64,000 bases of DNA, taken from the sequence record OP292654.1; one strand, given 5' to 3'. Below the pieces are notes generated by a model, which worked only from the letters and a program-made list of their open reading frames with translations, ran no database searches and was not told where the DNA came from. Shown here piece after piece: positions 2,983 through 29,385 of this stretch (its first letter is position 1; every line of letters starts with the position of its first letter). The position numbers and the translations under genes were made by a program.

Positions 2983-3645
2983 ATGAACTTATTTAAGTTA
3001 GAGCAATATAGAATGGTTCTGGAAGTACTGGAACAAATGAAAGATTGTTTAGACCGTGGCGAGACTTACACTAATGTTAAAGGCAAGCCGTTTAACGTTA
3101 CTCGTCAGTTTGGTATCTGCTGGCACGTATACGCCCATACGCCTAACCAAAAGATGACAGGGATCGGCACTGACTTTATGTGTGGTGCGTTCGCTGAAAT
3201 GGGGTTAGATTCTGCCTATCCGGTAGAGGGACAAAGTACTATCAATCGCGATCATATGCGTATTGCGTTCACTGCTCAGCGTAACTTGTACGACGACGAC
3301 ACGATCCACGGTGCGAACCGGATCAAGCTGGTGGACCGTCTGATTCAGTACTACCGCGAAAAGATGGAAACGCCTGTTAGTGAAACAATGTACCAGCATT
3401 ACTATAACCTTGCGTTATCAGAAATGAAATGGCGTGATACAGCTAACGAGGCTGTTTGGGATGTTCTGGATTTTGAGAACAATCAGATCTGGCCTAGCCT
3501 GGCCGCCTTGATTGTACAGGAAGATCCAACCCTGGGGGAAGTACTGGAAAACTCTGATATTAACTACCCGGACGATCTGACACTGGAAAACATTGTCACG
3601 ACTAACTTACAGGAACGGATTCAGGAAGCGTTAGAAAAGTTATAA
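2983..3645 (+). CDS. Hypothetical early protein
   Basis: GAGGAG SD, upstream promoter. Confidence 0.85.
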   Translation: MNLFKLEQYRMVLEVLEQMKDCLDRGETYTNVKGKPFNVTRQFGICWHVYAHTPNQKMTGIGTDFMCGAFAEMGLDSAYPVEGQSTINRDHMRIAFTAQRNLYDDDTIHGANRIKLVDRLIQYYREKMETPVSETMYQHYYNLALSEMKWRDTANEAVWDVLDFENNQIWPSLAALIVQEDPTLGEVLENSDINYPDDLTLENIVTTNLQERIQEALEKL

Positions 3646-3656
3646 TCTTTACAATT

Positions 3657-3692
3657 TAGGGCTTGACCGTTTCAAGCCCTATATAGTACTAT
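3657..3692 (+). promoter_or_regulatory. Terminator hairpin containing the -35 of the next promoter
   Basis: TAGGGCTTGA-CCGTT-TCAAGCCCTA followed by TAGTACTAT. Confidence 0.7.
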
Positions 3693-3724
3693 GTCAGTAC
3701 ACCAACAAACGGAGCAAAACGAAA

Positions 3725-4066
3725 ATGATGAGATTAAGCGAACTGAAAGGCGTACTTTTCCAACTGGAACAAATCGCACACAAAAGAGGGAACATTGATC
3801 CGATTGTGGAATTGTTCAACGATGATCTTTACGTTGAAGTAGATCTCCAGGCAATCGCAGATGATCCAGAAGGGCAATTGTTGCGTAACGGTACTATTCA
3901 CCTACCAACAAAAGAAATCGTGCGTCGTGGTTTCGCGATAACCTACGGCACGGATCGCGGCGAGGACTCAATCATAATTGACGCCGAAAGTAAAGCCCAG
4001 GCCGAACAATTATTCAAGAAACATTTTAGTTCATACGAATTAAAATTAGTCATCGAAGCAATGTAA
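3725..4066 (+). CDS. Hypothetical early protein
   Basis: GGAG SD, own promoter. Confidence 0.8.
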   Translation: MMRLSELKGVLFQLEQIAHKRGNIDPIVELFNDDLYVEVDLQAIADDPEGQLLRNGTIHLPTKEIVRRGFAITYGTDRGEDSIIIDAESKAQAEQLFKKHFSSYELKLVIEAM

Positions 4067-4080
4067 ATCTTTACAAAACA

Positions 4081-4120
4081 GGGGTTGACTTCGGTTAGCC
4101 CCTTATGTTAAAGTACTATC
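4081..4120 (+). promoter_or_regulatory. Terminator/promoter fusion with cUUCGg hairpin
   Basis: GGGGTTGAC-TTCG-GTTAGCCCC; TTGACT at 4085. Confidence 0.75.
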
Positions 4121-4123
4121 AAT

Positions 4124-4165
4124 CCAGCGAAATGGTCTAACCCACAAGGGTGGGAAGATCCGTCC
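4124..4165 (+). ncRNA. Two-hairpin element, copy 2
   Basis: CCA-GCGAAA-TGG; ACCC-ACAA-GGGT; GGGAAGATCCGTCC. Confidence 0.6.
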
Positions 4166-4185
4166 AGTGATTTTTATATGAATTT

Positions 4186-4230
4186 TAGACAGATCTTCCC
4201 ACTCTCTAGAGTCTCCCGTTTCGCCGGTAT
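4186..4230 (-). ncRNA. Two-hairpin element, inverted copy convergent with copy 2
   Basis: Minus strand: CCG-GCGAAA-CGG and ACTC-TAGA-GAGT (compensatory changes); promoter TTGCTT-N17-CATAAT at 4237-4265. Confidence 0.6.
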
Positions 4231-4329
4231 GTGGTAATTATGCCAGTACTGAAAAAGAAAAGCAAGGAAAAAGAATCGAAAAAAAGTAATTAAATCGCTT
4301 GATCGGTTCTGTGGTTATGATAATATAGC

Positions 4330-4645
4330 TACATCGAAACGACACGGCGAGCCGCCAAAGGAGTTAAGATTTGAACCATCAGGCTGATATCCTGGTGGCA
4401 GTACGTAGAACCCTAAGACGTATAGCGAACCAATAAGACTATACCAGGAATCACAAAGCGAAAGCACATCTATAAGGTGATTGTGATTAGTACTGAAAGA
4501 TTATCAGGTACTTAATAAATTAAACAAACTACTTATTAAATAGCCGCGTAGGTGTGAAGTTCTAATATCGCATTCGTGCCGTGTTAGACGTTCCGAAAGG
4601 AAACCGATTCACCAATTAATGCCCCTCATGCCAGGGGCATTTTTT
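4330..4645 (+). ncRNA. Candidate ~300-nt structured RNA with its own promoter and terminator
   Basis: ACACGGC 4342-48/GCCGTGT 4578-84; TCCTGGT/ACCAGGA; AATCACAA/TTGTGATT; TTCC-GAAA-GGAA 4591-4602; terminator 4618-4645. Confidence 0.55.
4618..4645 (+). terminator. Intrinsic terminator
   Basis: AATGCCCCT/AGGGGCATT plus T-run. Confidence 0.85.
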
Positions 4646-4745
4646 GTTTTAAAATAAAGTAAATTAAAACGAGATAGTACTTGATCATAAATGTGTATGC
4701 TGTATAATTACCTATATCGAAACAGCACTATTAAGGATTTAAAAA

Positions 4746-5129
4746 ATGACCAGAACTGTTTTTCGTACTGTTAAGTTAGAAGATGTTAAGGGCGTTACTA
4801 TCACGGCGAATCGTTGGTTTAATCGTGGCGATGGTAACACATATCATTCTGTTTATTTGGGTGTGTTGATTCCCGTTGAACGTGCTAACGAGTTAGGAGC
4901 TAATTTATATAAGCGTCCTATTTCAGATGGTACTGTATGGATCGACCTGGCACAAGAAACATTCGAATATGGTTACGAGCGTTGTTATGATCAAACGGCA
5001 TTAGCATTGTTTGATGCGGGTTGTTCTGATACAATCGCAGACACTGGAACCCTATCGCGTTTTTGTCGTGAATCAGGGATCGAATTTGCGGAAAATGTTC
5101 ACGATGTTAAACGAAAAAAAGATTTATAA
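4746..5129 (+). CDS. Hypothetical early protein
   Basis: AAGGA SD, upstream promoter with TATAAT. Confidence 0.85.
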   Translation: MTRTVFRTVKLEDVKGVTITANRWFNRGDGNTYHSVYLGVLIPVERANELGANLYKRPISDGTVWIDLAQETFEYGYERCYDQTALALFDAGCSDTIADTGTLSRFCRESGIEFAENVHDVKRKKDL

Positions 5130-5206
5130 TTGATTGTCAAAAGTACTTGCTTATTACGTGCGAGTACTTTACAATGAGTTATCACTTAAGCGAACGAGGT
5201 TTTAAA

Positions 5207-5392
5207 ATGAAAACTGTTAGACCTACCTGGGGTAATGTGGAATGGCCTTTGTTCACTCAGGAGAACGCGAACAAATGCCCTACGGCTCGTTATGTTGGCG
5301 GCATTTCTCGTTGGCTGTGCGAGTGCCGTTTGCCTCGCGAATGTAACGGAATTATTGCGGTAAACGCAATCAAGGCGGTGAAGCATGGCTAA
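5207..5392 (+). CDS. Small hypothetical protein
   Basis: GAGG SD before ATG 5207 (start moved from 5147). Confidence 0.65.
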   Translation: MKTVRPTWGNVEWPLFTQENANKCPTARYVGGISRWLCECRLPRECNGIIAVNAIKAVKHG

Positions 5393-5567
5393 ACAATACG
5401 CAATCGGGTTAGGTAGCAAGGCTTATCCTATTCCGGCAAAGTCAGAACGTGGGGCAAAGAATGCCGCTACTCGCCGTGCTGCTGATAGTGTAGGATATAT
5501 CAGTACTATCAGCAATATGTACATTGAAACACATACGTTTCATAATGGACGCTGGAAACCTGTATAA
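5385..5567 (+). CDS. Small basic hypothetical protein
   Basis: Overlaps the preceding stop; GGTG SD. Confidence 0.7.
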   Translation: MAKQYAIGLGSKAYPIPAKSERGAKNAATRRAADSVGYISTISNMYIETHTFHNGRWKPV

Positions 5568-5623
5568 TCTTTACAAAAGAGGGGTTGACTATTCAATCCC
5601 TTTTATAGTATTATGTATTCACT

Positions 5624-23011: not shown

Positions 23012-23666
23012 CGATGATGACTTTATGGCAGAACTACAAGCAGAATTCGCTGCTCAGATAACCACAGAAATTGATCTTGAATTAACAAAACGAATAATTC
23101 AATTTTGTTATGAGGATTATGAGGATGTGTTTCTTAAAGAATTATATCTAGTTCGACAAATGTTACCACTACTGGAAATTATAGAGAACTATTGTATTTC
23201 TAATCCAGACTTTACTGACATTTATTCTGATTGTGGTCAATTTCGTATTCAGCATGTGAAGGATAATTGTGTACATGTCTATATGAAATTTACATCTAAC
23301 AATCATTCTTCATGGCATGATGCTGCGTTAATTCACTTCAGTGATATTAATGATGGGAATGTTGTTACTCAGGACAAGTTTTCGTATTCTCCATTGAATA
23401 AAGGTATGAAAGTACTTGACTGTACTGATTACCGATTGGATGATAATTTGGAACATGATGAAGCATGGTACTTCCAAAAATTGACTCAGGTAGATTTGCC
23501 GCCAGAAGAATATTTTATTGGAGTTCAACGGACTTTAGAAAATCTTTGGGCTGGTAATTTTGTGTCATTGACGATCAATATGGACAGGATTTTTAATGAC
23601 AGTCATATTGAATCATATAGAAAATTAGTACATAAATTGGAAGAAGATAATGCTGAATATAATTGA
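22968..23666 (+). CDS. Paralogue-array protein
   Basis: HDEAWYFQKLTQ. Confidence 0.85.
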   Translation: MDNLHSKAIKEAITSDDDFMAELQAEFAAQITTEIDLELTKRIIQFCYEDYEDVFLKELYLVRQMLPLLEIIENYCISNPDFTDIYSDCGQFRIQHVKDNCVHVYMKFTSNNHSSWHDAALIHFSDINDGNVVTQDKFSYSPLNKGMKVLDCTDYRLDDNLEHDEAWYFQKLTQVDLPPEEYFIGVQRTLENLWAGNFVSLTINMDRIFNDSHIESYRKLVHKLEEDNAEYN

Positions 23667-28809: not shown

Positions 28810-29385
28810 AACTCTGAATGACCTTGAGAACAAGGATAGTTTTGACCCTGATAATCGAAAAGTAGAATATCAGTTGAGTAGTTCATTCAGTACGAACAGC
28901 AAAAGAAACCCGTTAGATGTTGGCATAGTTTGTACCACTCACGGCAATGCGGCTGTATAAAGCATGACAGTACTACATAAGTTCATGCCTGGATAGACAT
29001 ATAGGATCGCACCTACCTAATGTATAAGGGAGTTAAAATTAGCGATTGATTTATACAATATAGATCCGTCTCGATTTTGACAAATACAATGCTGTTCATG
29101 TGGCTATTGTATTAAGTGTAGTAAGACTACGACCGTTGTATGAACCGCGATAGGGAGAAACAGGACAACCCGCTTCCGCTCTAATAAGAAATTCGTGACA
29201 TGAAATTGCTATGACTATCATCGTCAGATTAATTCGTTCCTCTTTCGGGGGATGAAAATGCGTCAACAAATCTCGTCAGTAATAGTACTGAACGTTTATT
29301 AAGTAAGAGAGCGTAAATCTCAAAAGAACGTAACGTAAGTGAAGTTCAGAAGAGATTTACTGGAGCTACCGCAGGTAGTTCCTTG
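28810..29385 (+). ncRNA. Candidate large (~580-nt) structured non-coding RNA; strand inferred
   Basis: No ORF of 60 aa or more in an otherwise gap-free gene array; about 10 hairpins or long-range stems. Confidence 0.6.

Follow-up and report, generated by a model that had tools for sequence, protein, structure and literature searches.

Which gene, if any, occupies the 679-nt unannotated gap (positions 4067-4745) between XbC2_4 and XbC2_5 of the Xanthomonas jumbo phage XbC2 (OP292654.1)? The stretch of DNA analysed here (the window) comprises bases 1-64000 of this Rak2/GAP32-like jumbo phage, whose genome is 367.9 kb in size, and its segment 4050-4760 was 100% identical to the phage record at the same coordinates. 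The original prediction, made from the letters of the window, had placed in this gap a discrete structured RNA with its own promoter and terminator. It had also noted the lack of a long open reading frame (ORF), in agreement with our finding that the longest ORFs of the RNA stretch encode 21 amino acids (aa) on the plus strand and 50 aa on the minus strand. Comparison with related phages revealed a fold that is conserved, and covaries, in homologous loci, and we consider the region at about 4332-4650 to be very probably a structured non-coding RNA (ncRNA) gene. The first 17,581 bp of XbC2 form a T5-type direct terminal repeat (PMC11273794), and therefore the RNA locus lies within this repeat. 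Its predicted features are as follows.

4299-4326, plus strand: sigma-70-type promoter (-35 box TTGATC at 4299-4304, 16-nt spacer, extended -10 TG at 4318-4319, TAATAT at 4321-4326)
4332-4650, plus strand: ncRNA gene of about 315 nt, from the inferred +1 through the end of the terminator U-tract, without a conserved ORF
4332-4375, plus strand: poorly conserved 5' leader with a small hairpin GGCG/CGCC (4346-4349/4353-4356; 91.9% paired) and an exposed AAGGAG
4376-4398, plus strand: P1, 8-bp hairpin CCAUCAGG/CCUGGUGG (4376-4383 with 4391-4398) with the conserved loop CUNAUAU
4399-4404, plus strand: P2 5' arm CAGUAC, whose possible partner GUACUG (4490-4495) would close a three-way junction
4412-4448, plus strand: P3, CCU/AGG (4412-4414 with 4446-4448) and GUAUAG/CUAUAC (4420-4425 with 4439-4444)
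4449-4488, plus strand: P4, 8-bp stem AAUCACAA/UUGUGAUU (4449-4456 with 4481-4488) enclosing two inner hairpins
4458-4465 and 4467-4479, plus strand: inner hairpins of P4, GC-GAAA-GC and CAUC/GGUG, respectively
4489-4512, plus strand: P2 3' arm (GUACUG, 4490-4495) or, mutually exclusive with it, hairpin P5 (AGUACUG/CAGGUACU)
4513-4617, plus strand: variable 3' domain, with an AT-rich segment, then a UUCC-GAAA-GGAA hairpin (4591-4602), then a conserved UUCACC
4618-4650, plus strand: intrinsic terminator, 9-bp GC-rich stem (4618-4641) followed by UUUUUUGUUUU, called by the terminator scanner

Ten copies of the RNA were recovered by blastn, pattern scans using International Union of Pure and Applied Chemistry (IUPAC) codes, and a covariance model (R1) built on the core segment 4371-4515. 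They belong to two clades, whose RNAs are about 61% identical: an XbC2-like clade (XbC2, Erwinia phage Kaldavass, two complete IMG/VR genomes and four metagenome contigs) and a GAP32-like clade (Cronobacter phage GAP32 and one metagenome contig). In the ten-sequence alignment 98.6% of the pair cells were standard, compared with 31-44% when the 3' partners were slid by 1-3 columns, and nine pairs had changed on both sides, compared with 0-2 after sliding. Neither the observed pairing nor the observed covariation was reached by any of 500 shuffles. Compensatory changes beyond controls, which serve as a generic sign of a stand-alone ncRNA gene, were therefore present, and covariation among relatives, with a structure conserved in homologues, is what the original prediction had put forward as its own structural test. 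Within the XbC2-like clade, substitutions at paired core positions kept 2-5 pairs per sequence and broke none, and the apparent pair breaks in GAP32 were due to misalignment of a rewritten, still formed P4. G-U cells greatly outnumbered A-C cells (21 versus 4), which indicates that the selected fold is that of the plus-strand RNA, in agreement with the direction of the promoter and terminator. The whole stretch had a predicted folding energy of -80.7 kcal/mol, as against -65.8 +/- 5.1 kcal/mol for its shuffles (z = -2.9). Conservation was concentrated in the core (4376-4512): of the 45 columns of the 5' leader 5 were invariant across both clades, and of the 105 columns of the 3' domain 21, compared with 91 of 137 in the core. 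The invariant core columns include 38 of the 63 unpaired core positions, which are thus the same in phages of different hosts.

Analysis of the individual helices revealed that P1 is paired in 100% of the cells of the ten sequences, with two pairs changed on both sides (U-G to G-C or U-A, and C-G to U-A) and one-sided changes at two further pairs. P3, in which AAGAC faces a single C in an asymmetric internal loop and the end loop is variable (12-13 nt), is also 100% paired; in the GAP32 clade GU/AC is replaced by AC/GU, with both pairs compensated, and indels occur only in the end loop. In P4, a U-A pair has become C-G within the XbC2-like clade, and an A-U pair has become U-A in relative U42256 and in the GAP32 clade, where GAP32 itself has the stem rewritten as AUGCAU/AUGCAU-type pairs. 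This stem (AATCACAA/TTGTGATT at 4449-4456/4481-4488, enclosing GC-GAAA-GC) had already been pointed out in the original prediction, and it is indeed kept with compensatory changes, as is the GAAA hairpin. In P5 (4489-4495 with 4505-4512), 91.4% of the cells are paired, and three G-C pairs have changed to G-U. The arms of P2 are complementary and invariant in all ten sequences, and the P2 conformer was favoured over P5 in nine of them; according to the folding model, the energies of the two conformers differ by 1-2.7 kcal/mol at most in each of these sequences. The core consists of P1 followed by a three-way junction of P3 and P4, for which P2 may provide the closing helix.

The invariance of P2 is no proof of a helix, because CAGTAC/AGTACT sequences are over-represented across the whole window. 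CAGTAC occurs 292 times in these 64 kb, compared with 26 occurrences expected, i.e. about 11-fold in excess (e.g. 4244-4251, 4399-4404, 4490-4495, 28888-28893 and 29285-29290), and the palindrome AGTACT is found 514 times on both strands, about 12-fold above the roughly 43 expected. The density of AGTACT-type motifs within the RNA (2 per 320 nt) equals the genome average. A longer version, TTTCAGTACTAA, is repeated all along the genomes of XbC2 and Kaldavass.

The sequence elements named in the original prediction all proved to be present, displaced by one base at most, although not all of the pairings drawn between them are retained in the relatives. The pairing of the two ends (ACACGGC 4342-4348 with GCCGTGT 4578-4584) exists in XbC2, but only 73% of its cells are paired and several copies have C.A and C.C mismatches. 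The complementarity of TCCTGGT (4390-4396) with ACCAGGA (4443-4449) is likewise present, but one of the pairs of this stem is lost in five of the ten copies; the stem competes with, and is displaced by, the better-supported helices P1 (CCATCAGG/CCTGGTGG) and P3, both of which are intact in all ten. The AT-rich TTAATAA/TTATTAA stem is weakly kept (82.6%). The TTCC-GAAA-GGAA hairpin (4591-4602) is held, with a compensatory change, only within the XbC2-like clade, and the 3' domain of the GAP32 clade lacks about 32 nt.

The promoter matches the consensus at 8 of the 12 hexamer positions, in addition to the extended -10 TG. This score is below the threshold of the consensus scanner used, and so the promoter was not listed by it. 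The promoter sequence is identical across all XbC2-like copies, and its GAP32 counterpart (TTGCAA-17-TAATAT) occupies the same place. Transcription would start at about 4331-4334. In a blastn search, the segment 4298-4342 matched promoter-like stretches between the genes of numerous T4-like Aeromonas and Vibrio phages, which suggests a shared design of early promoter and initial transcript. The -10 region and the first transcribed bases (…TATGATAATATAGCTACATCGAAAC) were 82-100% identical over 23-60 nt in those phages, at up to four places in several records. At the other end of the gene, the terminator, which the original prediction had placed at 4618-4645 and whose 9-bp stem (4618-4641) precedes a U-tract, is kept in every copy; its loop varies, the stem shows U-A to C-G and C-G to U-G changes, and the equivalent terminator in GAP32 was called independently by the annotators of that genome. 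From the promoter type and the position in the terminal repeat we infer that the RNA is expressed early; the transcript ends, like this timing, are predicted.

The RNA was found once per complete genome (nhmmer and covariance model). Over the RNA, XbC2 and Kaldavass are 91.8% identical, whereas their genome-wide value is 84.6% (PMC11780129). The RNA is absent from phages CBB, fHe-Yen9-04, XaC1 and Hallingskeid (model R1 and nhmmer on whole genomes), and from BF, fHe-Yen9-03, RaK2, 121Q and WPEC3 (model R1 alone). The best R1 scores in the Rak2-like genomes without the RNA (18.5 and 14.7 bits) fell on AGTAC-rich sequence and were not credible. Pattern scans of IMG/VR, metagenomes and GTDB detected nothing beyond the two clades except three chance matches, all rejected by the model (L030, from a metagenome-assembled genome of Longimicrobiales, L033 and L034); 185,579 prokaryote genomes were scanned, with one chance match that the model rejects. 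The distribution is patchy, in that GAP32 carries the RNA and CBB, of the same genus, does not. Such patchy presence is typical of accessory, host-interaction functions.

No match to Rfam 15 at gathering thresholds was detected in the whole window. At E values of up to 10, the segment 4000-4800 gave spurious matches to microRNA (miRNA) and leader families, far below threshold, with none on 4376-4512. The families covered include self-cleaving ribozymes, riboswitches, 6S, transfer-messenger RNA (tmRNA), Y RNA, ROOL, GOLLD and HEARO, so that the check proposed in the original prediction linked the RNA to no known family, ribozymes included, even at permissive thresholds. ARAGORN found neither a transfer RNA (tRNA) nor a tmRNA. 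No description of the RNA was found in Rfam, in the papers on XbC2, Kaldavass and PA5oct, or by full-text literature search. Judged by comparative sequence analysis, this is a real, previously undescribed phage ncRNA family of narrow distribution, belonging to a known general kind, the stand-alone phage ncRNA.

The layout of the locus in GAP32 is the same as that in XbC2: an upstream terminator-promoter fusion, a two-hairpin module, the promoter, the RNA, its terminator, and a new promoter that serves the following gene. The protein genes flanking the RNA on both sides are unrelated between the two phages, and each flanking gene has its own promoter. Since the flanking genes are unrelated, the RNA gene behaves as an independent cassette and not as a leader or riboswitch serving a particular gene. 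Neither Pfam nor the functional PHROGs provided an annotation for the neighbouring proteins.

What such a cassette might do can be proposed only with caution. The best overall explanation, which in our opinion has about an even chance of being right as a whole, is that of a stand-alone early structured RNA gene whose product acts in trans by binding protein. Given the position of the gene in the 17.6-kb direct terminal repeat, host sigma-70 RNA polymerase would start at the T4-early-type promoter soon after the first DNA has entered, and would halt at the strong intrinsic terminator. The working part would be the 137-nt core, with P1 abutting the P3/P4 junction and P4 carrying two small hairpins, one of them with the GAAA tetraloop. 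The RNA would then act in trans on a host or phage factor involved in take-over or counter-defence, as a decoy, sponge or scaffold. We put forward this last step, protein binding in host take-over or counter-defence, tentatively and at somewhat less than an even chance; it is suggested by the compact junction fold, the invariant unpaired nucleotides across hosts, the poorly conserved leader, the patchy distribution and the early-gene location, and action through base pairing or coding is not what we expect. It is distinctly unlikely, though conceivable, that the RNA represents a new class of counter-defence or take-over RNA, i.e. a structured decoy made from the first-entering DNA that captures a host immune or RNA-processing protein. 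As part of such a decoy, the exclusive pairing of the self-complementary AGUACU-type segments in P2 or P5 could serve as a conformational switch.

A search for genes with the same phyletic profile (carried by GAP32, XbC2 and Kaldavass but missing from CBB, fHe-Yen9-04, Hallingskeid and XaC1) returned about ten small ORFs, for which no Pfam or informative PHROG match was obtained. Those listed for GAP32 are given below.

GAP32 271209-271508, 296613-297065, 312970-313200, 337899-338129 and 347156-347347: co-distributed small genes (loci L067-L071)

Several observations weigh against the proposed explanation. The comparison comprises two clades only, and the independent compensatory events number roughly 8-10. 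P2 shows no covariation, and its invariance is explicable by genome-wide selection for AGTACT-type motifs. The protein-binding mechanism was reached by exclusion, and the profile search yielded only small ORFs without an informative family. The evidence from public contigs is also mixed. In two wastewater metatranscriptomes from one study, the pieces placed on 3400-5600 were confined to 4223-4625, whereas a probable DNA run covered all bins. However, two of the metatranscriptome contigs cross the promoter (4223-4401 and 4244-4394) and one extends past the terminator, and the flanks of relatives may be too diverged for placement at the 85% likeness applied. Assembled contigs carry no strand or end information. 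One metatranscriptome piece turned out to be an unrelated contig sharing 36 nt, and a complementary DNA contig (4079-4377) with SMART template-switch adaptors at both ends represents RNA or DNA across the promoter, with ends that look artefactual. As expression evidence the public contigs are no more than a hint. The idea of a structured RNA with its own promoter and terminator is thus upheld by the sequence and by the covarying fold in homologues, but with respect to a discrete transcript the contig reads are ambiguous.

An unlikely explanation, but the main rival, is a trans-acting base-pairing small RNA (sRNA), in which the loops or the exposed leader would pair with host or phage mRNAs and alter their translation or stability. 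The promoter-terminator unit and the size fit bacterial and phage sRNAs, the terminator hairpin with its U-tract resembles an Hfq-binding 3' end, and there are conserved single-stranded stretches (e.g. the P1 loop and J2/3) that could serve in pairing. However, in the genomes of XbC2, Kaldavass and GAP32 no antisense match was longer than 12-15 nt; such matches were at chance level or in AGTACT context, and none was common between genomes. Moreover, the 5' leader, the usual seed site, is the least conserved part, and the unpaired core is invariant although the hosts differ (Xanthomonas, Erwinia and Cronobacter). We regard it as quite improbable that the RNA is a cis-acting leader (riboswitch or attenuator) whose P2/P5 switch sets terminator read-through into XbC2_5. 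The two exclusive, nearly iso-energetic conformers share GUACUG, the terminator lies about 100 nt before the gene, and one metatranscriptome contig passes it, all of which would suit such a leader. A cis-regulatory role was nevertheless rejected, since the downstream genes of XbC2 and GAP32 differ and are unrelated, and in both phages a separate promoter stands between the terminator and the gene. Furthermore, the segment from the core to the terminator, the would-be expression platform, is not conserved, and no anti-terminator pairing was found by eye.

The compact multi-helical fold, the invariant junction nucleotides and the GNRA tetraloop might also belong to a new class of catalytic RNA, self-cleaving or not. 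This is very improbable, given the lack of matches to Rfam ribozyme families, the single copy per genome, and the absence of a repeat or mobile-element context and of any indication of a cleavage site. A selection acting on the DNA, either as a T4-type origin giving a primer transcript (with an R-loop at the AT-rich 4513-4545) or as a binding array for an AGTACT-reading factor, is just as improbable. It would agree with the AT-rich segment 3' of the promoter, with the AGTACT-type motifs inside the RNA, and with the descent of Rak2-like phages from T4-like phages (PMC11780129); however, the compensatory changes and the 21:4 asymmetry point to selection on the plus-strand RNA, the AT-rich part is the least conserved, and the AGTACT density is only average. 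Least probable of all, extremely so, is that the RNA encodes a small protein, either a 21-aa plus-strand peptide (a dual-function RNA) or the 50-aa minus-strand product (in the manner of a type I toxin). A frame of 21 codons (4371-4436), preceded by AAGGAG and starting with TTG at 4371, does exist in XbC2 and two relatives, and for it the original prediction had suggested a dual-function RNA with an amphipathic peptide. In Kaldavass-like copies, however, the TTG start position is TGA, followed by an in-frame TAG, the start codon is missing in copy L025, and GAP32 has no equivalent ORF. With neither start nor frame conserved among homologues, the dual-function reading was abandoned. Four relatives keep the minus-strand ORF (50-51 aa) open, and in Kaldavass its counterparts appear as annotated coding sequences (CDSs), but 1-nt indels in the P3 loop shift its frame after about 10 codons when XbC2 or U42256 is compared with Kaldavass or U31414, and the GAP32 product differs. 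This ORF also lacks a Shine-Dalgarno sequence and overlaps the promoter. A type I toxin-antitoxin system was rejected, as there is no conserved small ORF with a ribosome-binding site opposite the RNA. The substitutions themselves are compensatory changes of the RNA type.

In the Kaldavass record (PQ464595.1; positions 4173-4698 of locus L002), the minus-strand CDSs XGIBIPCR_CDS0041, 0042 and 0043 are annotated across the RNA gene and its promoter. These are probably spurious calls.

Three structural motifs were considered and set aside. P3 contains CCUAAG, as in the canonical 11-nt GAAA tetraloop receptor, but the partner strand is unfit and GAP32 has CCUGAG. Neither a kink-turn nor mimicry of type I-E or I-F repeats of clustered regularly interspaced short palindromic repeats (CRISPR) fitted the RNA when compared by eye.

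Several features of the neighbourhood were also recorded. XbC2_4 (3725-4066) has a homologue in GAP32 (23183-23524; 55% identity), which is located about 14 kb from the RNA; the gene is truncated in Kaldavass and fHe-Yen9-04, is absent from CBB, and was found in no further phage record by tblastn. A long imperfect inverted repeat upstream of the RNA (4138-4214), which gives the spurious Rfam miRNA-precursor matches, consists of two face-to-face promoter-proximal hairpin modules (4080-4265). Promoters are found at these modules on both strands, i.e. on the plus strand at 4085-4114 and on the minus strand (TTGCTT-17-CATAAT), the latter reading leftwards from about 4265. XbC2 (4080-4104) and GAP32 (L003, 2797-2821) have in common, letter for letter, a 25-nt fusion of hairpin and promoter, AGGGGTTGACTTCGGTTAGCCCCTT, despite the unrelated preceding genes. 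At the promoter of the next gene (4676-4745; GAP32 L003, 3264-3327), AGTACT abuts the -35 box (AGTACTTGATC in XbC2 and AGTACTTGCAA in GAP32), and a similar 5' untranslated region (TATATCGAAA...AGGATTTAAAAATG) precedes the unrelated next genes of the two phages. With regard to the phage as a whole, the genus Xanthomonas has a G+C content far higher than 37.5%. The latter is the value for XbC2, which is 84.6% similar to an Erwinia phage and whose stated host is Xanthomonas vesicatoria (PMC11273794, PMC11780129). This mismatch in composition between the phage and its stated host is unusual.

Rak2/GAP32 jumbo phages have hundreds of unknown early genes, among which non-coding genes are hidden as gaps (XbC2 and GAP32) or as spurious CDSs (Kaldavass). 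The present analysis adds to their early region a covariation-supported RNA family with defined boundaries and a testable fold, and, if nothing else, it sets right the annotation of several public genomes. The location of this RNA beside other RNA modules in the terminal repeat suggests that RNA functions are substantial in the first minutes of infection.

Among known systems, RNA anti-CRISPRs (Racr), pseudo-ToxI and decoy tRNAs are early phage RNAs that occupy a host defence protein; the T5 tRNA/retron study reportedly provides a case of counter-defence by a phage decoy tRNA. Their mechanism is the one favoured here for the XbC2 RNA, and they share with it an accessory, patchy distribution, but the likeness is one of analogy only, as the XbC2 RNA has no tandem repeat and, besides its lack of CRISPR-repeat likeness as judged by eye, no tRNA-like fold according to ARAGORN. 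If it does act as a protein decoy, the known range of RNA-based counter-defence would be broadened, and if the structured-decoy reading is correct, the XbC2 RNA would be the first of this sort to fall outside the CRISPR-repeat mimics, the ToxI mimics and the tRNAs. ROOL and GOLLD are also structured, phage-borne, stand-alone RNAs whose function long remained unknown. The XbC2 RNA differs from them in being smaller (about 315 nt, with a 137-nt core), in not being located beside tRNA genes, and in having no Rfam match.

Within XbC2 itself, a candidate RNA of about 600 nt (28810-29385) has the same host-promoter type, is ORF-free and is conserved in relatives, and two-hairpin modules of about 50 nt (e.g. 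4081-4265) lie directly upstream of the RNA described here, in a neighbourhood that is kept in GAP32. In contrast to these elements, the RNA at 4332-4650 is single-copy and confined to a narrower clade: in a one-way comparison, model R1 gave no match at 28810-29385, a further copy was found by the core model neither in the window nor in any whole genome searched, and nhmmer likewise detected one copy per genome. The shared CAGTAC/GTACTG was dismissed as evidence of kinship with the 28810-29385 RNA, given the approximately 11-fold over-representation of this motif genome-wide.

The Pseudomonas jumbo phage PA5oct encodes, in its long terminal repeat, two ORF-free RNAs, ncRNA001 and ncRNA002 (236 and 451 nt), which stay abundant during the whole of infection, at 2-5% of phage reads, and whose function is unknown (PMC7318152). 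Model R1, applied with filters off to both PA5oct loci, scored at most 8.5 bits on the annotated ncRNAs, i.e. revealed no homology. The PA5oct RNAs were defined by RNA sequencing (RNA-seq), without a known promoter, whereas the XbC2 RNA is defined by covariation, promoter and terminator, without RNA-seq. As ORF-free RNAs of a terminal repeat, likewise carried by a jumbo phage, although a distantly related one, they nevertheless constitute the closest precedent for the XbC2 RNA.

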